A DNA stretch of 64,000 nucleotides. Origin: Paragordius varius (Eukaryota; Animalia; Nematomorpha). The position numbers and the translations under genes are program-made. The stretch spans positions 4,526,001-4,590,000 of the forward strand of contig OZ176055.1 of NCBI GenBank assembly GCA_964247055.1. The letters run 5' to 3'. Each line of letters opens with the position of its first letter. The first letter of the stretch is position 1. Positions 27,631 to 62,580 of the stretch are shown here, piece after piece. Under the pieces are notes generated by a model that worked only from the letters and a program-made list of their open reading frames with translations, was not told the DNA's origin and made no database searches.

Positions 27631-30407
27631 ATGAGCAACCAATGTGCCCGATGTGAAAAAACTGTGTATCCCATGGAGGAGATTAGAGCTCTAGACAAGG
27701 TTTTCATGAATATCTTATAATTATTTTTTTAGGAATATATTTTCAGAAATTTCCATAATAATATAATGTAAGTTAAACAGTGTCTCTTTTCCCCGCTTTC
27801 AATAACACCTTTTTATGAAAAAATTGGCTGGCGTGTTAAATATTTAATCCTAACATCTACCTTGACCCAAATTTTTGAATGGTCAAATTATACATTTTTA
27901 ACCAATTTTTTTCGGGATTACCTCTTTAAATAAGACATTTAGAAAACAAATTATTACTGTATTGTAAAACAGAAGAAGTATAGTGGTGCTTTTCTGGGTT
28001 TTAGGAATGTATTTTTTGATTTTGGACAAGAGTTTTAATTTTAGATGAAAATTGATTAATAACCCGTATATAAATTAATAAATTATGAGTATTGGCAGAT
28101 GTTAGTCGAAAGATGGATATGTTTTATGATGACTTTATTAATAGAAAATAAAATCTGTTTTTTTCCTATCGCCATATGTCAAATCCAATCACGTGGTAGG
28201 GCGACTAAATTTAATTTTTAGTTTAATAAGCTAATGGGTTTAGGTAAATTGGACTTTTAATATGACATATTAAGCAACACTTTTTTGATAAATTATATAC
28301 TAATCTATGAAAAGTGTTTAAGCCCCATCACTATTTTTTTGATTTAAACTTATAATTTTATTAATAAGGACTAATTTCAATAATAAGTGTCCAAATTACG
28401 ACATAAACTCAACGGTATAATATATCATTTACAATAATGAAAGTTTTAATAAATACAACACTTTTAAAAAAAATAGTTATAATAATTTAAACATTCTCAA
28501 CATTTTTTGCCAAATATAATAATTGTCATCAAACCAATTTATCATTCATTATATGCATATTACAATAAGTTTAAAATTTGGATAGCCTTAAATGAAAAAT
28601 TGTGTCATTGTCTTAATTGTAACTAAAACAGTCTTTTTGCGAGCTAAGTATTAATTCCAATATGTAATTCAATATTTCAAATATAAATTATGTTAAACAA
28701 TTTCAATAGGTGTATCATAAGGGATGTTTTCGATGCACAGAATGCGGAAATTTATTGAACCTCAAAAACTACAAAGGCTACGGCAAACTGCCATATTGTC
28801 CAACGTATATTTTAATACATCATTTAAATTTCCGTCAAAGCCAAATCACCAATTATATATATAATTATTTTTTTAAACATCATTAGACATTATCCCAAAG
28901 ACAAGTTTTCATCGGTTATGGACCCAACAACCGTAACAGCCTTACAGAATACGAAAATGCAAAGCACTGTATAAATTAACATAATTTAACATATAATTTT
29001 CAGAAAGATGTGGACCATATTAATAACTTTTTTCATAATTTATGATGGCATTAAAATAGCTCTGTGTTAAAATAGTTTTTTCATTGATTTTGTCAGTGGA
29101 TTTTGTTTTTTATTACGAGGTTTCGCAAAATATTATTTTTACGGACAAAATTTTAAGAAAAAATAATTACTTTTATGTACAATTAAATGGTATAGTAAGT
29201 ATAAACACTGATGATACATATATCCCTTTGAAATATTATACGACTCCGATAGTTTTTCCCATTATGTCTTTATCCCCAATAATGCTTAAGAATTTAACCT
29301 TCATACAATTTTGGGCTCAAAATGTCCATCATCGCATTTAGTTTTCTATCGGTGCAAACGGAAATTAAACACTGTGATAAGTGGTATCTTTGCATAACTT
29401 ATTTTTAGGATTCAATAAAACGGCCAACATAACATGTCATGATTAAAAATATTATAATATATATTTTTATTATTTCATTTCAAATAGCTTTGATTTTAAA
29501 GTAGCCAGGCATCCAAGCAAAATTGTATTTAATAAATAACAAACATTGTTCATAAATTACCAATTTTGTCATAAGGGTTTTGATAATGTATAATTATGGA
29601 CAATTAGTTGATATTTAAAAATTTTAATTAAATTATTTCCATCTCAGATACCAAACAAGTCAATCATATATTTTCATTAAAATAACAAGTTGTCAATGCA
29701 AAAATTATACACTCTTATATAGTCAATGATAAATTTAAAATAACCTGAAAAACCTTATTAAAACTGTCATGTGATTTATAATGCTTTATTTATCTTAATA
29801 AAAATTTCATTTTTGCATTTTTAGCTCCCTTTATAATCCATAATATAATGTTATTAAAGTTAATTAACATATTTTTAGGTAATTTCATTCACAAACAAAT
29901 ATAATATTTGATAAATTCTTGAAAACAGCTTAATTAAACCATTATTTCTTTGATGCAAGTGACTGACCACCAATCAATATTAAAACCTAATGGTTTTCTT
30001 CTTTTCCTTAAAATAATGTTGAACTCAAAATATGGCACACTCTATCAATCATATAAATTATAATTAGTCGAATACGAAATTTATTCATTTCCTTTATGTA
30101 AATTTATTTTATTATATATGCAATTATATTTCAGCTAAAATTATATAAATTTATTATGATATTTCGATTACTACAAGTAATCTTTGTCAAACGTAAAAAA
30201 TAAAATTAAAATATAAACTAAAATTTAAATTATAAAGTAAAAATTTATTTAAACCTTTTTATGATTTTTCACATTTTGATTCTGACACAACAGGTAAACT
30301 ACCATGCGGGATATGAAAGACAAAAAGGAACTGGGGCCGGCGGTGTCCCTCATCACGGCGCTGCTGGAGAAGGAGGCGCGGCCCCAGAAACAGCTGCCGC
30401 TGAATAA
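27631..30407 (+). CDS. LASP-like LIM + single nebulin-repeat protein, no SH3 seen (about 119 aa); absent from the ORF track
   Basis: Exons 27631-27699, 28710-28804, 28887-28968, 30294-30407. Reads [23 protein letters not shown]|[32 protein letters not shown]|[12 protein letters not shown]...MQST|[12 protein letters not shown]..., colinear with the LASP1 N-terminus (CARCGKIVYP..., LNMKNYKGY, HYPK). Confidence 0.88.
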
Positions 30408-32399
30408 AGGTTCCCTATTCCTCATTCATTCAACAGTCAAAACAACTAACTCATTTTCATGATGCTTCTCCACAGATCAAAAAACAATTTTCTATTTCAT
30501 TTCATTTTCATTTTTGCCAACTATTAAATAATGTATCTTATAAAAAATTATGATATTATCACATAATACTTTTTTTGGTTTAAAACTCTATCTAGATTTT
30601 TAAATTATTTTATGGAAAGCGAGAGACATGAGCCATGTCAAACATCATATTTTATCAATCGAGAATGTGATATAATACAACAAATTTATGGTTCTTTCAA
30701 TATTGTATAAATATTAACCAAAGATTGATTTAGCTTATTTTTTTTCCGTTACAATTAATATAAATTTGTCTTGGCAATTAACATTGAATCTTTGCAAATT
30801 GATTATAATTATTTATATGCAATCTGTACATCTTTGAGTCATAATTTAACAAATATTTTTTATTTTATAATTATTAAATATCTTATTTATTGTGAAATCA
30901 TTCATAATTTGTATAATAATCATCAAAAACTTATCCAACTAAAAATAAAAATACAAAAATTGGATCTATCTATCTTCTTCATGATGTAAAAAATATAAAA
31001 TAAAATTTATGAGATGCAACAATATAAATTATTTATAACAATTCGAATCTTTTTTGATATCAAATTTTTTTCTTGACCTTGAATGTAATATATAAATATA
31101 TGTTATTGGAAATCGATTAATGTGGAAAAATGAATCAAAAATTTAAGCGTCCACACATCCCTAATTTTAATTAAAGATTGTTTATACCCTGGCTGTTATT
31201 TTGTTTGCCGATATTTTTACAACGATTCTAACAAAAATATGTTTTACAAATAATTAGTAATTTTAAAATTTCGAATAAACACTAAATATTTGGTATTTAT
31301 TTATTTATTGGATCTGAAAATTACAATAGACAATAATGCATGGCTTGAAAAAAAAATTTATTTAACTTTGACGCAAATTACCTTTTTAGTATGACATTAT
31401 GGCATAAATTATTAGTCCGTCACTTTGTGAGGTAGTTTTGTGATGCCATTCAATTATCTCAAAAATAACTATGATATTGGTTAAAAATATGGCAGATGAT
31501 CTCGTAGTCGCATAAGTGTAAAACTTTAAAAAGGCCTTATTTCAAACATTTATATCTTTTTGGTAAATTCACAAATAAAATTGCAAAAATTTTTTTTAAC
31601 ATTTAAACGATCTTTACGCAGTAATGGATTATGTTTAGAGTATTTTGGTTGATTACACAGTGAAGTTGATCGTTGGGTAAAAAGTATCCTGATGAAATAT
31701 AAATAAGGGCCTTAATGTCATTAAGAAAATATATACACTTTTAAATACTGCTAAATTTTAACATCATAAAAAGCTTTTTCCGAAAAAATGGAAATTTTGC
31801 TTAAAAATTGGATTTATAGAAAAAATTTATCGAAACCTACTCTTAATATCATGATGAAATAGGTATAAAGAGGCTTTAAGATATTATAACACTTTTTCTA
31901 TAAAATTCGATAATGCTGAACATTTCTATCACCTAAATATTCATCTAACAATTGGTTCGTCTTAAAATCTTTATTTACAATCCAAATATAAAAAAGCAAA
32001 CAAACCATTAAATTAAAATTCTGAAGTGTTCAAAATGTTCATCATCAAATATGGGAGTGATATCTTTGAGCGTTGGTACATTTCCCTCATTACTCAAAAT
32101 AGAATTAAGGCTTCAACAAAATTTTGCTATATATTAGAACTTTTATAAATGGCAAAATTATGCATATATGTTTTTATCAGGCCATCTCTGCTATATTACG
32201 TTTATTAGACTAGATGATAAGGACAAAAAGTTTGGAACTTTTTTGAAAAAGCTTTGACCAAAATTTTAATTAACAAAGTATGAGCAAATTTTGACATGCT
32301 TTTATAGTGCGGTTACTACAAGAATCATTTTTAAATGACTCGTAAGGGCCAAAACAAAAAGTACCATGATATATATTTTCCCATGAGAATATGTATACA

Positions 32400-33417: not shown

Positions 33418-35261
33418 TTAATTGGTATATTTTTTGTTTGAGTGAATGCGTTTTAGCAGATTGTCATCATTTTTTAAAATATTGTAGAAGTCTTCACAAG
33501 AATTTGTCAAATTATATTTGACAGATAAAACGGCCTTTAAAGTTTCAACATTTAAATTTGATTTTTCCGATGTCCACACCTGATTTACTGTGGAAAAACG
33601 CGCTCAGTAGCAGCGTTGGTTCCAGGTAAAGAGTGCGAATTCCACAATTTTTAAAATATTAATGTATGTAATATAGTTGGCTTCAAAATGCTGAAATATT
33701 TCCAACTATTTCTTTTCTACTGTATATTTTTCTTTTGTCCATAATTTAAGTTTTTCATTATTAACATATCTTTTAACTAATGATACTTCAGAAAAAAAAA
33801 TCATTTTCTTACGGATTATTTGGGAGCATATATAATCAAATGATTTTTGAATATCGCACCAATTAAATTCTGATTTTAATGTTATCCAATGAAAATGATC
33901 AATTTCATTGAATTGCATCGTCCAGTCTTCCAAATAATCTTTACAGTTTGTATAAAACATTTTTATATGGTACAGGATATCTTGGTGATTTATTAAGCCT
34001 TGTTTTTCTAAATTATTTATTATATTGCGGATGGTTAATGGTATAAAATTATTTTCTAACCGTTCATTGGAATTTTAGGTTACTAACTTCATTGGCTACT
34101 TCGATTGCCGAAATTTTGTAACCTTCTATAAACTTATTAACATTTTGAAAGAAAGAAGCCTAATTATGTAAGAATTCTAACCATATTTTTAAAGAATCAC
34201 TTTCAAAAAACTTTTTTAAAGTTGTAGAACATTTGTCTTGTGATAAAAAAAGATTATAAAGGATCATACATTTTTTAAATTCTTTCGATAGCTGACATAA
34301 AAGCTAACCAACGAGTTTTACAATATCCAAACATTTTTTGATATTGAACTTCTGCATTTTCACAGAATTCTTTAAGCGTTTCAACGCGTACCGTGTATAT
34401 ATAAAAATAGGAATATATTTTAACAACTAAATTTTCCACATCTAGGGGTAACGAATCAGCAGCTGTTTGAATAGCGTTGTGTATTATATGCGCTGCACAC
34501 CCAACGCCAATAATGTTTTGATTAAGATTATCTGTTAATTTATGAAAAATATTTTTTGTTCCCCTCCTTGCTTTTCCACCAAAGTTCGTATTGGTGTTGT
34601 CAGCGCAATATGCGATAATTTTGTCTTTTAAATTATTTTTTTCTAGAATATGCATTATTGAAGTAAATATTATTTCGGAATTTTCACCGGGTAGGGAAAT
34701 TAAATCTAAAATTTTAATTTTTACTCCGGTTTCTGAATCAAAATATCTTATCAAAGTGGGAAATAATTTTGTTTCATGGTGATTTGATGCATCAGAGTAT
34801 AGGGATAAGGAATTAATTTTTAGCAAATCCTTTTGTATTTCAGAAAATGCATCGAAAGGACATTGCACACAATGGCTTCAGCCTTTGTGCGGGCACATGT
34901 AAATTTTATATGGAATAACGTGCGAATAACCTGGAGGTACAGTCCATATATCTAAAGGAATGATTGTGATTAACGGCGTAAAAAGATAACACGCCCTCAG
35001 CTAGTGCCAAATTCTTTTCTTCCTCTCCAAAAGCGGTTTTTCGAAAAAAATCGCTCATTTTGTAAGATGATGCCGCCATATCTAAACATTTTTTATGTTT
35101 CTATGTTTTTATATGCTTTGTAATATCATGCTTGCCGCCACGTGCTAGGGTGAGTTCCCCTCGCATATAAGACATTTAACAGATGATTTATTCTTCGTTT
35201 TTTTAAAAGGAAAATCTTTCATTAATTCATCGTTGAATTTAAAACCTCTTTTTGTGCTCAT
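33418..35261 (-). pseudogene. Near full-length hAT (Blackjack-like) transposase, disrupted by frameshifts and stops
   Basis: N-terminal Zn-finger KCLIC...GGKHDITKHIKT, then CARTKAEAIV, SDASNHHETKLFPTLIRYFD, ADNTNTNFGG, GCAAHIIHN, KTRWLA, and C-terminal dimerisation region VWTSEKSNLNVETLKAVLSVKYN. Confidence 0.88.
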
Positions 35262-38027: not shown

Positions 38028-38982
38028 ATGCAAGCCCACACAAATTTGAAATGCCTAGTTTTGATACTCGATTGTAATGAATTCTTTTGGGCAGCGACCA
38101 TAGAAAAAGAAAACGAGATTACTCTTTTGAATATCTATATACAAACTATTATTGCATTTACTTATACTTATCTCATCCAGAACTCATTTAATCATTTAGC
38201 TGTGATTGCCATAGATTCAGTTAAATCTCAAATAATAATAAATTCCTTAGATGACATTGTGAACCAAACAAATCAATATTCCTTTTCATATTCAAATTCT
38301 AAATTTGTTAATAAATTTAAGCTTCGTTTTATTCAAACAATTAAATCTTTTATCAGTGACACAGGTGAAAACTTACACAATGTTGGTTCATTATTATCAA
38401 CGCCATTATTTCAAGCTTTATCAATTTTAAATAAATTATCTGTTAAAATGCAAAAATTTAGTAAGTCAAATTATAATATTAGGCTATCCTATCGATAAAC
38501 ATATTATATTTATAAAAATGGAAAATGAGATTGCACAGAATCAATATTTGAGCTTTATGAACGGAATATTTTCGGCACAAAAACTAAACGTACCATTAGA
38601 TGTATGTTTAATTAGCAACAAAGGTGATTTAGATCTTCTACGTCAAGCTAGCTTCATTACAAGTAAATATTTTTTAATTTTAGATGGATCATATCAAAAA
38701 TTTCCTTCGGATATGAATACGAATCAATTAAACATGAAATTTATTATTTCAAATCTTTACAATTATTTAATTTGGCTTTACCTACCAAAGCTATCTTCAA
38801 AATATAAGACGTGCTGGAATGTGGTGCAAAATGATAGCATTGATTTCAGAGCGGTTTGTTTTTGTCATCGAAACAAAAAACAACCGATTGATATTGGATT
38901 TGTTTGCTCGAATTGTCTTGCCATATTTTGTAATTATACGGATGATTGCTTTGTGTGCCATTCTCATTTAAATAAAATTTGA
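38028..38982 (+). CDS. GTF2H3: TFIIH subunit p34/Tfb4 (about 303 aa)
   Basis: Exons 38028-38460, 38483-38662, 38684-38982. Motifs LVLILDCN, NHLAVIA, YLSFMNGIFSAQK, LLRQASFITNGSY, DFRAVCFCH...IGFVCSNCLAIFC. A 22-nt intron joins the two ORF-track pieces in frame. Confidence 0.92.
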
Positions 38983-41522: not shown

Positions 41523-44500
41523 TCAAGTTTGGTCATTTTCATTTGGAAAATTTGGTGACGGAGAATGAGCTTCTGAGGCAAGAGCTGAATCAGAATTTTC
41601 GTGTAGAAGGACATATTCTCTTGTGCTGTATCCAAATTTTAAAACATCCCCTTCCATTAATTCATAATATCTAGCGTAAAATTAATAATAATTATAAAGA
41701 ATATAAACTTTATTCATTATATGATTATGTAATAATTTGATAATTTATACAGTAACATCTTTTGTGCAGCTTTTTTGGAAATTGACTCTTATCAATCTAA
41801 CCAATCTATAAAATGGTTATAAAGTAGGCTAATCATTTTTTTTCTGCCTAAAACCTCTATGACTACGTTGGTTAATACAAATATCGTTTTTAATATTTAA
41901 AGATAAACTCTTACAAATGAATTTTTTAATAATATTTGGTTCTAAAATATCATCAACAGCCATTTTGGTAGTTTTTATGATATGATGGTAAAAAAATTAA
42001 CGCAGATTTTATATTTCTTAAGTCGTGTCTTTAACCTAAAAATCCACTATAATTAAAAAAATCTTACATTCTTTATAAAATATATATCCATAAAGATCTA
42101 TATTATATTGCAAAAACAATTATTATTATATTATTAAGTAATTAAACCTTTGAGCTTCTATGAGTTTGTTATTAAGGTAGGTGCCATTGGCGCTGGCTAA
42201 ATCTATGATATAAGGTTTAATCTGTGCTTTGGGTTTCGGTTTAGGTTCTACAAAAAAAGATTTTGGAATTTTAAAAAATATTTTTGTATCTTAAATGTAT
42301 AAAAAAATATTCCCAAAATTAAATTGTCAAAAAACTTTTGTTTTTAATTTGGCTTTTTTGGTATATTAACCAATGTTTGTAACAAAAATAACATTTATAA
42401 TGTCTTTTTTTCTGTTTCTGAAACCAAGTTTTAACATGGTATTAAGAACCTATAAACGTTGACTTGCCTCTAATAAAATTAGATATTTTAATCTGAAACT
42501 ATCCAATGTTCATATAATAAAATGATTTAATAAAACTTCATCGTATAGCTATACTCTAAATCTAGGGTTAGACCTAGTGTTAATATTGAGTTTATCTTAA
42601 CTTTCATTTTTTTCATATATGTCAATTATTAATTTAAATTCGTATAACCGATTGCATTTATACCAAAATTGCAAAGTTGATACGAAATTTATAAGTGAAA
42701 ACCCCAAGTCAAACAGTTGTGTCGTACTGAACAAGCACGAAACTAGTGTGAGATTACTATTGACGAAGGGTTTCACATATCATTTATTATTTCAATTAAA
42801 TATAACTTTCGATTAATATTCTATTTAATTTTCGTTTAATTATCTTACGGATTTGACAACTGTTATTACAAAACATTATCAATCAGTCATTCAAATATAT
42901 ATTTAATTGTGTGTTTTAATTACAAACTTAAATTTTCTTGCTATAAGTTATGATTTTTGGAGGCTCAATTATTAAAAATTTTCGCTTATAAAATTAAGTA
43001 TATAGTGCAATCTAAGTTTAAGCCCTTTTTTGTACCTATGTAAAGCATTTAAAAATACATATATAATGATGAAAAATGAGGCAAAAATAACCAAGGGCTG
43101 AAGCGTCAGTTATGACGGTTGAAGGGTCAAAATCGACGGTAATTTCGTTTTTTTCTTCTCCTTGGGGCATGACAGCTCTAAACTGAAGGACTGCGTGTTG
43201 TTTAGAACAGGAAGGATGATCCACAGGGATTTCACTTATTCGCCTATCTCGGCCAATCATATAAGCGCTTTGACGGTGCAAATATAATATGGATCCTATT
43301 GATTGGCCCGACTTAAACGGGTACAATCTCCAACGTATTTTGGGTATTCTAACAGATCAAAAATTAATAATTTATATGTCAACTGGCTATATTAAATTTT
43401 AATAACACAAATGTCCCAAATTATAGATATCACGCTAAGCTTAATTTAATTTTTTAGTATTAAAAACATAGCTTATTAAGATTTTAAATTATTAAAAATT
43501 AATTAAAGTAATCTAATTTGAGTCTCGCAAAAACAGAAAAGGGGTGCTTAATAACAAAGTTATGGTTTAATAAAGTTGAAGACAACACATTCATTTCATT
43601 CCTCCGATTCGAATTGGGGTAGTTAGCTACCACAGGCCTGTTTAATAAATTCTTCAAAAAATATAAAAGGAATCGAAACCATGGCAAAAGTTTGCCTTTA
43701 TGTAATATTAATCTAAATATGAATGAAATTCATTCAAAAATATTTGATATTACTAATTTTAATGTAAAACACAAAAGTAAAAATTTAGTCAACATGACAT
43801 GTGTGCATTAGCTAAATTCAAAAATTATACAAAACAAACTACTTTTTTATTTCTATCAATGTTATATGTGATTTAAATAAATAGGTTTAATTTTAGCTTT
43901 AAAATTAAATAAAGACAATATTTTATAAAAATATTATAAAATAAAAATGGCGTCGAAGTAATTTGATATGGAACTTTTTTTCAAAACTAAAGCGTTTCAT
44001 TCAAGATTTTTTAAACAACATCAACTTAAATATAGTCAGAGGTATTTAGATACCCCAATTTGAATCGAAGTATTATACGTTAAATATCATTTTTAGCAGA
44101 TGATAGAGAAATTTTTGAACTTAAATTGGTGTTTTATAAAAAACATGTTTAAAATAGAAAAATTAAAAAAATATTAGGTGTTAACGGCAAATTTTCAAAG
44201 TAAATTATTTGCAATAAATACATATAATATTCATATCATAATAAACATGAGTTAGATATATAAAAATAAATTATAATTACATATTTTGTACATTGATATA
44301 TAGCAGGAGGGTCCAACATGCAGACCTCCATAAATTTTTATGCAACCCGCAAAATATTTAAATTTTTTTATATAAAATTCAAATTCCATGCAATACACAG
44401 GTTATAAATTTTTAGGACGTAAAATACTAATATATAACACATTTATTTGTTTGGTTTAAAGCAGGGTGTCCAACAAATGGCTAAAGTGGGCAAATTATTA

Positions 44501-45417
44501 ATTCCAAAAACCCGGTGGCCGCATTTAAAACATTTATTAGCATCATAAATTAATTTATTGAATTTTAAACATAAGTCTCAAAATGCAAACACGATATAGT
44601 GATTTTTCTAGTTCTTGCCAAACGGGTACAGGTATTTTAAAAAATTGCTAAAAAAATATCAATTTTATTAAGTATATGAGCCAATTTATATATTTATGGA
44701 TTTTATATATCACGAGCCGCATATCAGAGGGCTGCGTGTTGGAGACTCCTGTTAAAGTATATCTGCTTTTTACTGTAAAAATATCAATTAAAAGCTGTTT
44801 TGGCAATGAAATGACTTGCATAAATTGGTGAAAAATATACTTTAAATTGTGTTTGTAGAATATTGTGTTTTAAAATTGTAAAATAATGCCTCTGTCCTTA
44901 TATTTATATAAATAGGACCCTCTTAGTTTTTTAAATTGTAAATGCGGCTCTTAAAGTTCTTTGTGTTGGGAGTTCCCGGTATAATATCTAAATTTTTATA
45001 ACACTGCTAATAACAACTATATTGAACATATAATTATATTGATAAAAATTAATACCTTGCTTCAGAGGGTTCATTGTATTTTATAACAACACCTTTAAGT
45101 TTGTTGGTTTCTTCGGTCAGTTTACCAGAAAGTTCAAAATTAGGACCCTCTTTTGGAACTTTTGGCTTTTCTTCTTCGTGTTTAATATTGTGTTCAGGTT
45201 TTCCCCATTGTACTTTATTAAAATCATTATGATATTTTTCAACAGCAGAATATCCAGACTTGTTGGACTTGGGATTATGCTTTTTATATATAATTTTTTC
45301 AATATCACTTTCTTCTACGTGACTCATTTGAGGAGACATTGACCATTTAGTTCTTGAACTTATCTTGGTTTCTGCATATTTATTTTTGCGTTTGTGAGAT
45401 TGGGAATCGCCTTTCAT
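41523..45417 (-). CDS. SNIP1: Smad nuclear-interacting protein 1 (FHA domain; RES complex Pml1 homolog; about 288 aa)
   Basis: Exons 45417-45056, 43348-43092, 42247-42148, 41670-41523. Motifs PNFELSGKLTEETN, KYNEPSEARIPKIRWRLYPFK, HRQSAYMIGR, DHPSCSKQHAVLQFR, KPYIIDLASANGTYLN, RYYELMEGDVLKFGYSTREYVLLHE. Confidence 0.95.
43760..44071 (-). mobile_element. Partial inverted copy of the piggyBac-like MITE
   Basis: Contains GGTATTTAGATACCCCAATTTGAATCGAAG, the reverse of the family left end, plus AAAATGGCGTCGAAGTA. Boundaries approximate. Confidence 0.55.
44462..44751. mobile_element. hAT-Charlie-like MITE
   Basis: Ends CAGGGTGTCCAAC...GTTGGAGACTCCTG. Left flank GTTTAAAG is partly repeated on the right. 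Body homologous to 16584-16864. Confidence 0.7.
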
Positions 45418-45440
45418 TTGCGCAGCAAATGTAAAAATGA

Positions 45441-46188
45441 ATGACCGATTTTAAATCATGGTTTATCGCGATAAAAAACGACAAAACAAATTACATTCAA
45501 AATATCTCAGATTTGCCACATAGTAAATCTTGTTTACATAATTTTAATGATTTTAATAAACATTGCAATTTATATGAAATTAAAGAAATTCCTGGATTGA
45601 TATTGATAAAACATTTATTTACGCATGAGGCAAGTGTGAAATGGTATAATCGGTAATGTAAATTTAATCAATAGATGCATGAAAATATATCCTGATCTTC
45701 CTGGTAAATCAAATTTACTACATAAAAATTCAAAAACTCGATTACGATGGCTTACGTTTGGACTTCATCATAATTGGGACACTAAAGTATACAATTACGA
45801 AGATTCATCTCCCATTCCCGACGATATTATTAATATCAGCCTAAATATTTCTAAAATATTTAATTTTGATCCATATAATCCAGAAGCCGTTATTGTTAAC
45901 TATTATGAACCAGGAGATATACTGCGTGGCCATATAGATGCTTCTGAAATCGACATGACAAAACCATTAATATCCTTAAGTTTTGGTTATTCTGCCATTT
46001 TTTTAGTCCAAAGTAATGAGGAAAGAGTTGCATTACTACTTGAACATGGTGACATATTACTTATGAGTGGTGATTCTCGTTTTGCCATGCATGGTGTGCC
46101 TAAAGTTTTTCCTAATGACTTGCAGGATGAAAATTTATTTACTTCTAGAGTCAATATAAATATTCGACAAGTGTTTCCAAATAAATAA
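45441..46188 (+). CDS. ALKBH1: AlkB homolog 1, 2OG-Fe(II) dioxygenase (about 241 aa)
   Basis: Exons 45441-45652 and 45675-46188 (22-nt intron). Motifs IPGLILIK, LRWLTFGLHHNWDTKVY, PEAVIVNYY, GHIDASE (HxD), HGVP, RVNINIRQV. Confidence 0.93.
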
Positions 46189-46930: not shown

Positions 46931-48012
46931 AAGTTTTATCATGAAAATTCCTCTAAATAAACAAATTTATGATAGCATGAGCCATATACTTTATAGGCGC
47001 TGTTTTCTTAATAAAGCTGGAGTACTTTGTCTGTATAGTGGAAAAGCAATATATGACATTAATATGAAAATTTTTGGGTGGTTTAGGTTTGCTCGGCTAA
47101 CTTAAATCGTCTGAAATAAAAAAGGAAGCTAAACCTACACACTCATATTGAAAAGCCAATTAAAATAATTTTAAATATGGTAAATTATGATATTTGCATT
47201 CTAAGTTAACTGAATCTCGTATGAATAAAGACTTAAGCGGTTTCAAATTTTAATATCGACAAGGTATTTGTGATAAGGATAATCATATATATATATATAT
47301 ATCTCCTACTAATATGTTTAAGGGGATGTTGCGGCCCCAGGGACTTTTTCTGAGGCTCAAGAAATTCAAAAATTTATATGTATTTTTGATGGGCCTTTTA
47401 GTTTTCGAAAATTTTTTTATACCCATTCATAATTGTTAAATTGATTTTTAAACCTCATATCTAAGAAATCATAAAATATTTGTAACATTATATATAACAA
47501 GGCATATGGATTGAAATCAGTTTTAAACGGCAATCTTAACTAAATAAGATAAGTCCGCAAACTTACAGTTTAATTTTTGTACTATTCAGAAAAAAGTTTA
47601 TTATTTTATAAATAGTTTTTAGAATGTTAAATAACTAGGTCCTAATTTGCACAGGATTTGCCAAAAGTCCTTTATTATTTAGATAGATAATTTTTGAACT
47701 TCAAAAACGTGTTCTTTCAATTATAGCCGTTAAAAAATTATTAAATTTTTATAACCCTGAATATAAGAATTTCAAATAATTTTTTAAGCAAACTAATTTC
47801 CATTTCACCTTGGAAAAAAATAAAAATATTTTGTCTTTACATAATTATGCAAAACTAATGACAAACATCGTGAATAATTATTTTTAAACAATTAGCAAAC
47901 CTTGACATTGTATACAAATAATGTATTATAAAAGCGATTTATTTGTTATTTAGGTAAATGTAATAGTTTTTAAAACTATATAAAGCGGGTAATTTCCCAC
48001 TTAAATTTAACA

Positions 48013-48305
48013 ATGAAACTATTCGTTCAATCTTTGGTAAGTATTTTTTGATAATAACCAAATTTGAGATGTGGAATCTCTGTACTATTTAATATTTTGT
48101 TAATTATTAGCTGCTAGGGATATTCATACTTCAGGCCGCGATAATTTCGGTACGAGGGATTGAAAGTGCTGGAATAGCTGAACCACATCACAAGAAATGG
48201 CTAATTGCTCCTGATGATACCTTAGTAGTGCACAGAAGTAAACGTCAAAGAGGTCATGGCCATCGAGGTGGGGGAAGACGGGGAGGCGGAAGGCATCGCG
48301 GTTAA
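48013..48305 (+). CDS. 72-aa secreted prepropeptide releasing a Gly/Arg/His-rich cationic peptide; absent from the ORF track
   Basis: Exons 48013-48036 and 48111-48305, separated by a 74-nt GTAAGT...TTATTAG phase-0 intron. Reads MKLFVQSL|LLGIFILQAAIISVRGIESAGIAEPHHKKWLIAPDDTLVVHRSKRQRGHGHRGGGRRGGGRHRG*. Confidence 0.8.
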
Positions 48306-48440
48306 GAAAAACGTTTTTTAAAGAACGAATTATGCAAAGTTTTTAAATTTAATTTCAATAAATATTGAATATGTAGAGATAAATTTATTCATTCCCCAGC
48401 CAAAGTGTACAAAAATAATATGGTTATGGAATATTTTGCT

Positions 48441-51400
48441 TTATTTTTTTCTTTTTTTGGTTTTGTCTGCTTTTTTCTTTTCAACCATTTTTTTCTTGGG
48501 TTTAGAAGATTTGGTGGTGGAAAATTTATCATTAGTATTTCCACTACTATCTTTTGCGACTTTTGTGATGTTTGGCTTATTCTTCTGTTCTTTTTTAAGT
48601 ATTTCTGTGGTTTGTGTATTTTGTATTTGTTTTTCAGAAGGTGTTAAACGTTTTGTATCTTTGGGAATCAAAGTAGTATTACTGTCATCTGATGATTCCA
48701 GTATCTCTGCGTCAGCGGTAGACGATTCATTGGAAATATGAGTTGAAGATAGTGTTGGAGAAGATGTTTCGAAAATTTCATTTAATTTTTCTCTCTCGCG
48801 TTTGTCGGGAAGAGAGGGCCCCTTTTCCACATCATTTTTTATTTCTTGCAAAGCGAATCCCATAGAGCTCGTGTTTGGCCGCTTAACCCCTGAAGGCGCG
48901 ACCGTATTACCATAGATATCGCAAGCTCGTTGACCCACATAACTTACGGCAGTTTCTGTGTCGCAACACGGACACGGAGCACTATCCATTAAATATCCTA
49001 TGGAAGGGCCAAGACTGTCTCCTGTAGATGCCATAATAATTGAAGAGTTTCGAACCGACGATTGGAAATAGCGGCCAATCACAAAGGTGATTACCTAATT
49101 ACAAAAAGGTTATCTGCTATAAGTATCTAAGATTGATTGGTATAAATATATTTCAGAGGCCTAAAAAGTTTATGCAAAGCAAAAAAGAGCCGTTTTAAGA
49201 ATATTTATATTAAGATGAAAATTAAATGGTCGACGGCGAATTATTATGGCATTTAGAATTAGAATAACCTATGTTTTTTATATTTAGCAATAAGACATTA
49301 AATAACTCATTCAGAATCCGATTCCCTTTTAGCACAAAGAAAATATTACGATTATGATCGTTTTTGAAACTAAATGTGAAAGAGGCATAAACAAAAGTTT
49401 TTGTGTTACCACTTGATGACCTTTTGGGGTAGTTTTATACCCCAGAAATCAAATAAAAATCCTAAAAAATGTTTCTAACATTGGGCCAAATCTAAAACCC
49501 ATGATACACAAAATTTTTTTTCAAATGTAGAAGTGTAAAAAAACCTCATCTCAAACTTTTTCGCTGCCATTTTTTTCTTTTTTTGTACTCGTTAATACAA
49601 TATGCAAATTAATGTATTGATAAAATATAAATAATTAACTTGGAAAGCTTTCAAAATGCAATTTACCAGCAAATTTTTAATATTTATTAATTTTTATATC
49701 AGCTGTTCATTTCAATGGTGTTAATGAATTTGGGACTATTGAAGTTAAAAAACTGTGACTTTTACAGAAGAGGGTTTCATAATTAAGTTTCAACCATTTT
49801 CAAAACAGTAGTTTGTTTACCACATTAGGCTTTGGAGTCGAAAACTACCCCAAAATGTCATCATTAAAAAATAAAAATTTAGGGAAGTAATCAGGTAGTA
49901 TTTATTAAAAATAGAATAAAATACATCGATAGCCTTAATTTTTCTTATATCTGAACCTGTAAAACCCCAAGTGTCCAAATTAAATATGTTCCGATATCGA
50001 CGTAATCATCGAAGGCAATAATTATGGCTTTACTGCACCCTTGCAAGTTGATAGTTAGTTGAGTCGAAGGATTTACATTGATAAACACAGGTTTTGCTGC
50101 AGTTTGTAAGGATTTTTTGGTCGCTCCCAAAAAACCCGTATTCTCTTCCGAATGAAGGCACATAGTAACATTGATTTGACAACAACTAAATGGGACGCTT
50201 TTTGACAAGTATTCGTCGTGTTTAATTTTGCTATGTTTTTTAATATACATATAAGCGAATCTCGACTCAATCGACTGTTGTATTTACGCACGGCATGAAT
50301 ATTTAAAGTCAATTATAGAATTTTCCAAATTAAAAAAGGACATTTTGGCGGAAAACATTTATACATTAGAAAATTAAACTTTTTTGGTTTTTGATTCCAT
50401 AATTAATGTGATAAAATCATATTATTGATAAATAAAATTTTAAATTAATTGAAAATCTCATTTACTATTCATTTTATTCATTTTTATTATCTTTCTTTGT
50501 GTTTTTTTACTTTTTTAATGCTTGATCGTTAACATCAATATATTTTAGTGAAATCCAACCAACTGTATACCATTCAGTATGATTTTTGCCCCCGCAACAT
50601 TCAAAACTGGTTTGTAGATAATCTAAGATTGATTTAGTTTTTGGATCCGATTTGTATCTACGCACAGAAAAGTTGAAAAATTAATTTTTTTGATACCAAG
50701 TTGATCAGTATTTTTTAGACAGATCTAGCAGGAAACTTGTCTGTAAAATTCATTTTAAATTTAATTATACTGTTTGAGTCGGCAACAGGCATCCCTTTAC
50801 TACTATTTATGCGGCCTGCTAATGGTTCAATAGAGGTTTTAAAAACGTACAGTTAATTTGCGACCTGCTTTATACATTTTAAATGGACTACCGCCCGAAA
50901 AAAATGTCCGGTAGTTAATTCTTATGAGAAAATCGAAATGTGGCAACTCTTGAAAAAACCGCATTAGATATGATTATTAACACTTCGATTCAAATTGGGG
51001 TATCTAAATACCCCAGACTGAATTTAAATTAAAATTTTTAAAAACTGAAGGAAACGGTCCCAATTTAAATTTATGCTTCTATCCTGATAAATATTATATA
51101 AATATGCCAAAATATCTTGATAAAATTTTGTTTTGAAAAAAAAGTTTCATCTCAAACTACTTCGACGCCATTTTTAATTTACAAAACTTTTGCAAAATAT
51201 CGTCTTCATTTAATTTTAAGGGTAAAACTAAAGGTTATTTTTTATATAAATTACATCTAACATTAATAGAAATAGAAAAAGCGGTTTATTTTGTACTATT
51301 TTTTAATTTTACAATTTGACACATGTCACGTTGACTAAATTTTTACCTTTCAGTTTTAGCTCAAAATAAGTAATATCAAGTATTTTTGAATAAATTTTTT

Positions 51401-52078
51401 TATATATTTCGGTTTATTAATGTTATATAAGTGCAAAATTTTGCCATGGTTTCGATTGCTTCCATTCTTTTTAAAGTATTTGATTTTAAACAGGCCTGGG
51501 GTATCCAACTACCCCAATTTGAATCGAAGGACTAAAATGCGTGTGTTGTATCCAAGTGTTAATCTTATGATGAAACTTTGTCTTTGAAACGTTTCCAATA
51601 AATTTCGAATAACATCCATAAATAAATGTGCATATATTAATTTTTACCTTTTTTCTGCCGCCAAGAAATTTTCATTTAAAATGCTTTCCAAATATTTTTC
51701 ATGTTTCAAGGCGACGATACCGCAGGCAATTGCAAGAAATGGCATCCAAAAAATGAGACAAAGCCATGGCAACAAGAGGAAAAGAGATTTATTACGAGTT
51801 TCCCAACATTTGTTTCGTTGAATCAACCAAACTCCAAACGTGTGTAAGCATACACTGGCACAGGCTAATTGAAACCATATAAGAGTTAGAGAATCCGGAT
51901 TATATAGACGTCGATTTATGATAATGAGAGCTAGGGAGCGTTCAAAATGAAATTTTAACCACAATGTTATTGCAAGGAGAGTTATAGCTAGCACTATGGA
52001 GAGTACATTGATGACAATACATGCATTCCCAATCGAAATCCGACCAGTTTCATTCAAATGGACAGGGCACAGTGCCAT
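48441..52078 (-). CDS. Peripherin-2/ROM1 (RDS)-like tetraspanin with long C-terminal tail (about 501 aa)
   Basis: Exons 52078-51648, 50657-50511, 50230-49957, 49094-48441. N-terminus MALCPVHLNETGRI. EC2 loop LQTSFECCGGKNHTEWYTVGWISLKYID and EYLSKSVPFSCC...INLQGC. Post-TM4 GRYFQSSV...GYLM, colinear with RDS motifs. Confidence 0.85.
49410..49866. mobile_element. MITE in tetraspanin intron 3
   Basis: Inverted ends TGATGACCTTTTGGGGTAGTTTT / AAAACTACCCCAAAATGTCATCA. Related ends near 31420 and 59445. Confidence 0.6.
50981..51558 (+). mobile_element. piggyBac-like MITE (TTAA TSD) in tetraspanin intron 1
   Basis: TTAA|CACTTCGATTCAAATTGGGG...TTGTATCCAAGTG|TTAA; highly similar to 36413-36964. Confidence 0.8.
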
Positions 52079-52256
52079 TTTACGAAGCTGATAGATTGTT
52101 TTCGCCAAATCACAATGATTTAATGTTTAAAAATATATATATGTGTGTTTTAGAATGCGTTATACCTTACATTAAATATATTATATAAAAATAATTTGAG
52201 GGTAATATTCTTTTATACTTACTTGAGCGAAGATATCTTCTTTTCCACTATTGTTT

Positions 52257-52842: not shown

Positions 52843-53110
52843 CAAGCGATCTAACACAAAGGCTTCGCTGGCCGCATTTGAAATATATATGGGCATTTAT
52901 AAATAATTTTTTAAATTTTAAACATAGGACAAATTACATCCACAATATAATTTTTTTTCTTGTCAATTGGATGGAATTATTTAGAAAACTTGTTCAAGAA
53001 TTATCAATTTTAGATTTTGTGAGTATATTTTTGATAATGAATTTTCCGCGGGCCGCACAGAAAGTCCCGGAGGGCCAAGCGGCCCGCGGGCTGCGTGCTG
53101 AACACCCCTA
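52843..53110. mobile_element. hAT-Charlie-like MITE
   Basis: Body homologous to the 16584 and 44462 copies. Right end GCGGCCCGCGGGCTGCGTGCTGAACACCCCTA. Confidence 0.6.
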
Positions 53111-56864: not shown

Positions 56865-57338
56865 ATGAGTTTAATGCCTTTTGCACGACAATTTAGTTGG
56901 GATCCTTTTGACGCTATGCCGCTCAGATTGCTTGGGCAATTGATTGCAACTGATGTGGATGATTTTAGAAATTTGGATGATCGGCTTATATCGCGTTCGG
57001 ATGCTGGATTATCTGAAGTCAAGATTGATAATAAAACTTTTAATGTTAATTTGGATTGTCATCAGTTTAAACCCGAAGAAATTAAAGTTAAATTGCAGGA
57101 TAACAAATTGATTGTTCATGCTAAGCACGAAGAAAAGAAAGATAACCATGGAGGATATTCCAAAAGGGAATTTACACGAACTTATCTTTTACCAAATGGT
57201 TGTGTTTTGGATAAATTGACATCCAAATTGGATGACAAAGGTATGCTTATATGCCATTGTCCTCGTGATATTAAACCGGAGTCTACTAGTACTAACATTC
57301 CCATCCAGAGAGTTCCTTCCCAAGCGATCAAACAATAG
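56865..57338 (+). CDS. Small heat-shock protein (HSP20/alpha-crystallin), intronless (about 157 aa)
   Basis: Motifs WDPF, GLSEVKIDNKTFNVNLDCHQFKPEEIKVK, HAKHEEKKDNHGGYSKREFTRTYLLP, SKLDDKGML, and C-terminal IPI (I-X-I) motif. Confidence 0.95.
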   Translation: MSLMPFARQFSWDPFDAMPLRLLGQLIATDVDDFRNLDDRLISRSDAGLSEVKIDNKTFNVNLDCHQFKPEEIKVKLQDNKLIVHAKHEEKKDNHGGYSKREFTRTYLLPNGCVLDKLTSKLDDKGMLICHCPRDIKPESTSTNIPIQRVPSQAIKQ

Positions 57339-59844: not shown

Positions 59845-62580
59845 TAATATATTCTGAGTCTTTATTAATTGTCTATTCACAAAATTAGGGCGAAAAATCA
59901 GGCACTTATTGTTTTTCTTGTGGTCTGTGTGTACCCTAGATGAGCGCGTTAAAATTGGCAATATGTATGTTAATTAATTTACATTTTATGAATATGCAAA
60001 AAGATTTGGAATGGCTAATATCCTTATACATAAAATATGAAATTCATCTGTAATATAGTTTTAATATTTATAATATTTGAAAAGAAAGATCTAATACATT
60101 TTTAAATTAAAAAAAAGAGAATTGGGATAGTAAATCTAAAAAAATTAGCATTTGAGAATTTAATTACTTTGACAGTCTTTTTCATCTATAGCTTTGGAAC
60201 ATTCTGGGATTCCGTTACATCTAACGGCACATTTGCTGGTAAAGGGGCACAGAATATATCCTGGAGGACATGTTGGTAATGGCGGAGGAGGCTTAGGCTT
60301 AGGTCCTGATTTTATAAATTAGTTATACATATGTATTATTAATGTAAGGTTAAAAACCAATCATTACTAAAAATGTTTTTTTTGTGAAAATCAACAATAT
60401 CGACATTAACCAATATTACAAGTATTATGTGCATAATTACACCGAAACACTATATTGATTATTATAAAAATTGGAATATACATTATTGGGTAATTTTTAC
60501 CAGGATTGTTTCCTGCACAGATTATTGGATGTTCATCCAAACCATTTGGGCAGTCTTTGACCCCATTACAAACCCTGAATCCGGGGACACATAACCGAGT
60601 ATTTGCAATGTCACAATCGAATTCATGCATTAAACATCGGCACACTTAATCGTAGTATGAGTGATATATTTTAGAAAATAATAATTAACTGAAGTTTAAA
60701 ATAATTATATGAATAAAAAAGTAATTTTGGAAGCATAAATTGATTATCATTGTCAACCCTTAAACGTTTCGTTTGAAACAAGATTCAACACAAATGGCTT
60801 TGGGTGGCATTTTTACAAAAAAATCGGCGGGCCGCATTCATATTGGGTCAATAATAAATATTTTTATAAGATTTTAAACATAAGAATGTGAAAATATAGC
60901 AGAAACTATTGTTTACACCAATTTTTACGAGTTGTCGCCAATAGGTAAGGTTAATTCAGAAATTATGCCTAAGTTTGTAAACGTATTTTTCAAATTGTGG
61001 AATTTTTATTTTTCCAAATTTTTTGCAGGCCTTACATAATATCTCTGAGCATGTTAGATACCAATGGTTTAAATATTTAAATTTTCTTTATCCCAAAAGG
61101 GTAATTATTTAAAACTCAAAAGAAATTATTGATTATACCTGGCAGGTTTGGACGGAACCCTTTAGGTGGAGGTATAATCGGTTGATTAGGGTATGGCTGA
61201 AGTGGTCTAATTTTCATAGGAGGTGCCATTAATGGGAAAGGAAATGGGCGTGGACGTTTTTGGTTCATGGGAAAATAAGGGATTGGAAGCATTGGCCAAG
61301 GCTGTGTAGGTAAGAGAGGGGGAGTTTGAAAAATTGGAACTAGACTGCTGGGTGGATTTATACTTGGTAAGAGTTCAGGGTTAAGCTTTTTCCCTCCTAG
61401 TCCATTGGAACCAACAAAGGCTTGTTGTGGTCCTATTTATAAAATAATTTATTATTCTCGATGAGAAACAAACATTAAATCATATTTTATATTTTTTCTT
61501 TAATTTATAAATATTTTATTGAAATACGTATTTTAACTGATTACACTTAAATGTTGTATATTTAAATATGCCCTAAAATCATCAAGAAATACAAGACTCT
61601 TATTAAAATTATATAATTATCCAGTTATATAAGTTAAAACCACAAATGAAAGGCTTTGGGCTTGTTTTAAAATAATAATCTACCTGTGTTAAGAATGGGT
61701 GTGCATATATTTCCACACCAATAAGAACAGCATACATAACCAGGTTTCGGACATATCCCCACACCTTGAGCTGTTACACCGCAACGATTTTCAGTCGATA
61801 AGCACAAGGAATTAAAATTCATTGAGAAGGGAGACAAGAAGGAAAATGGGGACATAACGCCACTTGAGCCAAACGGTTGGGCACATTTGGGTGGGAAGGG
61901 CTGAGTAACTGGTAAATTTTTGGGCAGAGAACGTTGAGATCCAAACATTGGCCAAAATTTGGTGGCTTCCGAATCTTAATTTAATATATATCATATCAAG
62001 ACAATTATTGTCATATTTAAATTTTATGAATAATATATGTGGATATCTTATTTCTGCATAATATGGATGGGTCACTTGAATAAAACTAATAAAAAGTGTA
62101 AACCACTTAATTCTGATTTAGGAAGCAATACTTCCAAACATCGGTCACAAATAATTTTTTTAATGAAAATCGTTAAAAGATGAAATTAAAAACTCCTGTG
62201 TTACCGTCTAAAATTATTTTTTAAGTAACACTTGTGCTATAAATAATAAAATTCATCTTTAATACCGTCTTTATTTATAGAGTATCAACGAGACTTATTT
62301 TGTATATCGGTAAAATTTTAATTTCACAAACAGGATTTAAACCATTTGAAAACAAAATGTTAACACCGTAGTTTAGAGACTCGATCCTAAATACTAATTA
62401 AATTCCACCTTACAGATCCTAAACCAATTTATTGAGATTATTTAAAAAATTTAGTTTTTATTAAAATTAAAGAGGCTAATAATTAATGAATTAACCATGA
62501 AAATGAATTATATGCAAGATGAGAATCAGAATCATCCAATGACCAAATTTTTTTGATAAGTAATAGATTGTAAAATGCAT
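57435..62580 (-). CDS. Secreted WAP + Pro-rich + 4x LDL-receptor class A protein (about 436 aa)
   Basis: Exons 62580-62496 (signal peptide), 61974-61684 (WAP-like, 8 Cys), 61432-61139 (Pro-rich), 60644-60501, 60305-60168, 58111-57980, 57749-57588 (one LDLa each), 57499-57435. All introns are phase 1 GT-AG. No TM segment. Confidence 0.82.
60779..61066. mobile_element. hAT-Charlie-like MITE in an intron of the WAP-LDLa gene
   Basis: Body homologous to the other copies (CAACACAAATGGC...GCGGGCCGCATT). Flanks GTTTGAAA / GTTTAAAT look like a decayed 8-bp TSD. Confidence 0.6.

Follow-up and report, generated by a model that had tools for sequence, protein, structure and literature searches.

The question raised by this locus is whether a short GC-rich block in AT-rich DNA belongs to a gene for a secreted peptide precursor and, if so, which kind of peptide would be released from it. 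The window, that is, the whole 64-kb stretch that was analysed, is animal DNA of ~27% GC; the genome of the horsehair worm Gordionus montsenyensis has a GC content of 26.93%, against 27% in the window (10.1101/2023.06.26.546503). On balance, the locus is probably a genuine two-exon gene, specific to its lineage, whose secreted precursor of 72 aa would release a glycine-rich, cationic, defence-type 19-mer at an RSKR site.

A two-exon gene model and its composition

The open reading frame, the splice signals, a coding-type composition and the processing motifs are all present in the sequence. The model comprises 72 aa on the + strand, with an 8-codon exon starting at ATG 48013 and a 64-codon exon behind it (Table 1). 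The intron carries a YTRAY-like TTTAAT ~20 nt ahead of its acceptor, and its donor hexamer, GTAAGT, is rare, with just 8 copies on the + strand across all 64 kb. With the intron retained, the ATG frame closes after 12 codons. No Met occurs within the exon 2 frame, which the acceptor's TAG closes immediately upstream, so that translation into a protein depends on removal of the 74 nt. An intron of this length is unremarkable in a genome where ordinary introns stand beside micro-introns of 22 nt, and the Pfam-supported frames of Tfb4 and ALKBH1 are readable only through the latter.

The first-pass annotation had described a two-exon, 72-aa ORF with a 74-nt intron, a signal-peptide-like N-terminus, a propiece, and an RSKR site followed by a 19-aa tail with 6 Arg, 3 His and 9 Gly. 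The ORF and its intron proved exact at their coordinates, as did the counts of the tail, and the N-terminus and propiece were present as described, the former passing a crude heuristic and the latter being mildly acidic. In silico, the gene-model part of that reading holds up well.

The N-terminus consists of a Lys-containing n-region, a hydrophobic core and V-R-G at -3/-1, the heuristic that it passes being a crude one only. Exon 1 is predicted to contribute the n-region and the beginning of the hydrophobic core to this putative signal peptide. The hydrophobic stretch, LFVQSLLLGIFILQAAIISV, spans 20 residues and averages ~2.3 on the Kyte-Doolittle scale (hand count). The likeliest signal cleavage falls between SVRG and I, with V at -3 and G at -1; alternatively, the stretch could act as a signal anchor. 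An R-x-K/R-R cleavage motif is present as RSKR with Gln next to it. The 19-mer behind this motif begins with that Gln, contains an internal RR and ends in Gly just before the stop, and its composition (9 Gly, 6 Arg, 3 His, 1 Gln) includes zero hydrophobic and zero aromatic residues.

TATA-like and polyadenylation-type motifs lie on either side of the model and fit it, but they were given little weight because such motifs are frequent by chance in DNA of 27% GC, with TATAAA at ~3 per kb and AATAAA at ~2.7 per kb in the window. The TATA-like motif at 47979, if used, would leave a 5' UTR of only a few nt. The string TATAAA(A)GCG occurs twice, at 47927-47936 and 47979-47987, 52 nt apart, and neither exact form recurs elsewhere in the window; the pair may represent a duplicated promoter element or a coincidence.

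Table 1. Positions of the candidate gene, its predicted parts and neighbouring features in the window
Feature	Position	Strand	Remarks
TATA-like motif TATAAAAG, then CG	47927..47934	+	86 nt upstream of ATG; weak evidence
TATA-like motif TATAAAGCG	47979..47984	+	34 nt upstream of ATG; weak evidence
Coding exon 1	48013..48036	+	MKLFVQSL; A at -3; first ATG in its open frame
Phase-0 intron, 74 nt	48037..48110	+	GTAAGT...TTAATTATTAG; 22% GC
Exon 2	48111..48305	+	64 codons (48111-48302), then TAA
Remainder of predicted signal peptide	48111..48158	+	LLGIFILQAAIISVRG
Propiece, 25 aa	48159..48233	+	IESAGIAEPHHKKWLIAPDDTLVVH; net charge -2, pI 5.8
R-S-K-R, furin/kexin-type proprotein-convertase consensus	48234..48245	+	motif present in sequence; cleavage predicted
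Predicted product, 19 aa	48246..48302	+	QRGHGHRGGGRRGGGRHRG; charge +6, pI 12
Stop codon TAA	48303..48305	+	
AATAAA polyadenylation-type signal	48357..48362	+	52 nt past stop; weak evidence
Tfb4	38028-38982	+	confirmed neighbour
Micro-intron in Tfb4, 22 nt	38461-38482		GT-AG; GTAAGTCAAATTATAATATTAG
SNIP1	43036-45417	-	confirmed neighbour; intron ~1.7 kb
ALKBH1	45441-46188	+	confirmed neighbour
Micro-intron in ALKBH1, 22 nt	45653-45674		GT-AG; GTAATGTAAATTTAATCAATAG
Lys-rich ORF	48441-49082	-	convergent with candidate; own AATAAA at 48389-48384
Tetraspanin-like exons	49945-52108	-	
HSP20	56865-57338	+	confirmed neighbour

Exon 2 has a GC content of 0.50, and its flanks have 21%, 22% and 23%. 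Measured in 50-nt steps, the edges of the GC block are the acceptor and the stop codon, and among the ORFs of at least 64 codons in the window exon 2 has the highest GC. Its values at the three codon positions (GC1/GC2/GC3) are 0.67/0.52/0.31, giving a GC1-GC3 difference of 0.36, and this gradient, GC1>GC2>GC3, runs in the same direction as in the confirmed genes ALKBH1, SNIP1, HSP20 and Tfb4. Third-position GC is at background, and the third positions of the confirmed genes range from 0.20 to 0.41. The gradient is kept in the 45 codons that precede the tail (0.60/0.40/0.31), and the tail itself, which encodes the 19-mer, has values of 0.84/0.79/0.32. Within the tail, all four Gly codons (4/4) and all six Arg codons (6/6) are in use, with synonymous codons mixed, and Tandem Repeats Finder detected no tandem repeat in exon 2.

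These values were compared with a homogeneous null, namely Markov simulations of the window. The 2342 simulated ORFs of at least 64 codons had a mean GC of 0.286 (SD 0.033, maximum 0.428) and a mean GC1-GC3 of 0.008 (SD 0.069, maximum 0.242). Exon 2 lies above all 2342 in both measures, a comparison whose significance the homogeneous null overstates because the window contains other GC-rich patches of unexplained origin. On its own, a frame open for 64 codons is not rare, with ~58 per simulated window. A crude signal-peptide filter was also applied to every one- and two-exon model of at least 55 aa. From the real window it retained the candidate locus together with an internal rhomboid segment; from 60 windows simulated by a first-order Markov model it retained 0.1 loci per 64 kb, a rate subject to multiple testing, as the screening extended over thousands of windows, and an RxKR site was present in 0/60. 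A relaxed scan that additionally required coding-like composition kept only the candidate locus and a tetraspanin N-terminus. Judged by these comparisons, a chance ORF is very unlikely, and the candidate is probably a real gene.

Homology searches and known peptide families

Exon 2 served as the query in the homology searches, exon 1 (8 aa) being too short to search alone. It had no match in Pfam at E <= 0.01, no match in a word-indexed search of 5.8 billion proteins and no usable match in an ESM Atlas feature search. An exhaustive phmmer search against 1.84 billion representatives returned two matches, P0001 (E 4e-11) and P0002 (E 1e-4). Both are internally repetitive proteins, and they were rejected as homologues because their E-values add up 8 and 3 copies, respectively, of one weak match. 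A single copy of this match to the propiece scores only 26-29 bits; against a library of 2.4e11 residues, this equals an E-value in the thousands by our own Karlin-Altschul estimate. Repeat-summed phmmer E-values are a trap for short queries.

The first-pass annotation did not recognise the sequence as any named family, and Pfam, the word-indexed search and exhaustive phmmer yielded no credible homologue. Within the 64-kb window, tBLASTn, BLASTN and relaxed model scans found no paralogue, and no Rfam family or tRNA was found for the candidate. The missing homologues were not counted against the gene because the databases hold no close kin of the animal. An exact look-up of ten window ORFs in a collection of 15 billion proteins found 0/10 present, and the nearest relatives of the HSP20 encoded in the window, from a mollusc and an annelid, are only 43-55% identical to it.

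Among known families, the candidate was compared with the armadillidins of terrestrial isopods, which are rich in Gly, then Arg, contain His and RGGGR-type repeats, and end in ...RG (PMC7017220, PMC5031766). Like the candidate product, they are linear, cationic and dominated by Gly, with Arg second and His present, and the armadillidin PP repeat, ...GRGGGRFGHGGGRFGG..., is of the RGGG/GGGR type also seen in the candidate. The overall design predicted for the candidate is likewise shared: armadillidin precursors have a signal peptide and an ...RG end that yields a C-terminal amide, and the family is confined to a single lineage. However, armadillidins are ~50 residues long with an aromatic residue in every repeat (GGGF/Y), whereas the candidate product has 19 residues and no aromatic one; the candidate, from a different phylum, also differs in placing a propiece and RSKR between signal peptide and product. 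Neither the word search nor exhaustive phmmer found similarity of exon 2 to armadillidins, in the signal peptide or elsewhere, and the candidate falls outside this family.

The NLP-29, CNC and GRSP peptides of nematodes are small secreted Gly-rich peptides with Gly/Tyr-rich repeats (PMC2453101). They resemble the candidate, as predicted, in coming from an ecdysozoan worm, in being encoded by small, fast-evolving genes and in being secreted and Gly-rich. Many of them are released at basic sites and begin with Gln. Their sequences, by contrast, are rich in Gly and Tyr (Trp) with YGG-type repeats and their genes lie in tandem clusters, whereas the candidate has His and Arg, no Tyr or Trp, and no paralogue in the window. 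Exon 2 showed no similarity to NLP-29/CNC in the word search or phmmer, nor does the candidate have the hallmarks of that family.

A third comparison concerns the shepherins, plant peptides of which shepherin I, made of Gly and His, has antifungal activity induced by Zn(II) (PMC10698721). Shepherins I and II share with the candidate the combination of Gly and His and a near lack of hydrophobic residues, and they need to bind Zn(II) for their activity. They differ from the candidate in arising from a plant glycine-rich protein precursor and in their regularly repeated GGH, lack of Arg and low net charge, whereas the candidate is Arg-rich with a charge of +6. No sequence match of exon 2 to shepherins was found and the precursor layout differs, so that the likeness is compositional only. 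Shepherins nevertheless set a precedent for antimicrobial activity in a Gly/His peptide that lacks an amphipathic face.

Convertase-processed, amidated prohormones share with the candidate the predicted layout of a signal peptide, a spacer, R-x-K-R, Gln at P1' and an end in Gly before the stop. They form a class by processing logic rather than a homologous family, and the processing of the candidate is a prediction. The 19-mer is also much shorter than known glycine-rich antimicrobial peptides. Taken together, the candidate appears to share design, not ancestry, with armadillidins, NLP/CNC/GRSP peptides and shepherins, and it has the defining features of none of them. It is probably an orphan prepropeptide gene of a known kind, namely a secreted precursor releasing a glycine-rich cationic peptide.

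Predicted processing, alternative readings and significance

According to the proposed mechanism, the N-terminal 24 residues would direct co-translational entry into the ER as a signal peptide; anchoring by the 20-residue stretch, as the alternative, would still place the remainder of the protein in the lumen. A furin/kexin-type convertase would then cleave past RSKR, the mildly acidic propiece would be discarded, and the 19-residue Gly/Arg/His peptide with its charge of +6 would be set free. Its N-terminal Gln may cyclise to pyroglutamate, and a carboxypeptidase and an amidating enzyme would turn the terminal Gly into an amide, giving pGlu-RGHGHRGGGRRGGGRHR-amide; the internal RR could give two shorter amidated peptides. 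The predicted propiece and product pair a charge of -2 with one of +6, and an acidic propiece with a cationic mature peptide is a common pairing in defence peptides. Lacking hydrophobic and aromatic residues, the product is unlikely to form membrane pores and may act instead by binding polyanions (microbial envelopes, nucleic acids) or, via His, Zn/Cu. In this respect the predicted 19-mer is unusual, being untypical both of membrane-lytic antimicrobial peptides and of neuropeptides. That the gene is transcribed and spliced, and that its product is secreted, cleaved, modified at its ends and used in defence, we infer from the sequence; "antimicrobial or signalling", the candidate role in the first-pass annotation, is likewise drawn from the design of the precursor.

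The gene itself is open to dispute, since a GC-rich patch (an old insertion, a decayed exon or a transposon fragment) might be open by chance behind an ATG and GT...AG. The homology searches, which lack a conserved relative, would fit such a patch, as would further short GC-rich patches, at ~30290-30400 and 53046-53105, where no gene is obvious, the ~0.1 signal-peptide-like chance models per window multiplied by thousands of windows, and a minus strand that is likewise open across the patch. We nevertheless regard this reading as unlikely. The patch shows in-frame GC1>GC2>GC3 with third positions at background, as in real genes; it runs from hydrophobic through polar to basic within itself; it is bounded by the acceptor and the stop; 24 nt past an ATG in good context stands a GTAAGT donor that is both perfect and rare; and the locus has no match elsewhere in the window. 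It is scarcely credible that the coding strand is instead the minus one, with the 72-codon open frame at 48127-48342 belonging to the convergent neighbour as an exon. In its favour, this frame is open and rich in GC, but an open antisense frame is the usual by-product opposite Gly/Arg-rich coding, and this one has no ATG, no Pfam match at E <= 0.1 and position values (0.61/0.28/0.47) unlike the gradient of the confirmed genes; moreover, the neighbour has its own stop at 48441 and its own AATAAA.

A real gene could also have another product, either a small type II membrane protein held by its signal anchor, with the Arg/Gly tail in the lumen, or a larger protein that reaches exon 2, as its last exon, from an undetected exon further upstream. 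The hydrophobic stretch is long enough for a membrane span, and RGG-type tails are found in many non-secreted proteins. We consider such products very improbable: V-R-G satisfies the -3/-1 cleavage rule, RSKR in a type II protein would still meet convertases in the Golgi, and, with regard to a larger protein, the 700 nt upstream are uniformly of 18-28% GC with no coding-like + strand segment, while an ATG exon lies directly upstream, in frame, with a consensus donor. It is distinctly unlikely, as well, that the secreted precursor serves neuro- or endocrine signalling, with pGlu-RGHGHRGG-amide and GGGRHR-amide released via RSKR and RR to act on a receptor. The layout is that of a standard prohormone, with signal peptide, spacer, basic site and a Gly ahead of each basic site or stop; however, with so many Gly residues in the tail, one before RR and one before the stop are expected by chance. 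The 19-mer is of low complexity, it offers no aromatic or hydrophobic residue for receptor recognition, and Pfam, the word search and phmmer found no likeness to a known neuropeptide family.

It is conceivable, if rather doubtful, that horsehair worms have a repertoire of orphan secreted cationic peptides specific to their phylum and that this gene belongs to it; its product would then bind metals or polyanions and target microbes or, as the worm grows within an insect's body cavity, the tissues or immune system of the host. In our literature searches, we came across no immune effector or secreted bioactive peptide described for Nematomorpha. If expressed, the product would be a first candidate of such a peptide from this phylum and an entry point to the defence or host-interaction chemistry of a neglected parasitic group. 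At present it is a well-formed prediction of a peptide, and a +6 peptide made only of Gly, Arg, His and one Gln would be a minimal test case for glycine-rich action without an amphipathic face.

Other features of the window

The start codons of the divergent SNIP1 (-) and ALKBH1 (+) genes are 23 nt apart (45415-45443). The ATG of ALKBH1 (45441) is the second of two overlapping ATGs, the first of which meets a stop after five codons.

Two GC-rich patches were noted elsewhere. At 30290-30400, a patch of ~100 nt has 63-75% GC against 25% GC in its surroundings; it contains no inverted repeat, and short ORFs occur on either strand, among them one of 52 aa at 30304-30462. At 53046-53097, a patch of 75% GC contains a perfect 11-nt inverted repeat (CCGCGGGCCGC / GCGGCCCGCGG) that encloses a 22-nt loop, with no match in Rfam.

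On the minus strand, two adjoining ORFs with 43% GC occupy 61119-61975. One has a coding-type gradient (0.56/0.46/0.28), and one ends in a Cys-rich sequence, CGVTAQGVGICPKPGYVCCSYWCGNIC, with no Pfam match; the pair may mark an unrecognised gene for a Cys-rich secreted protein. A 197-aa ORF at 34275-34868 (-) has no Pfam match at E <= 0.01 but a transposase-like look (CAAHIIHNAIQ), and it is probably a transposon remnant.
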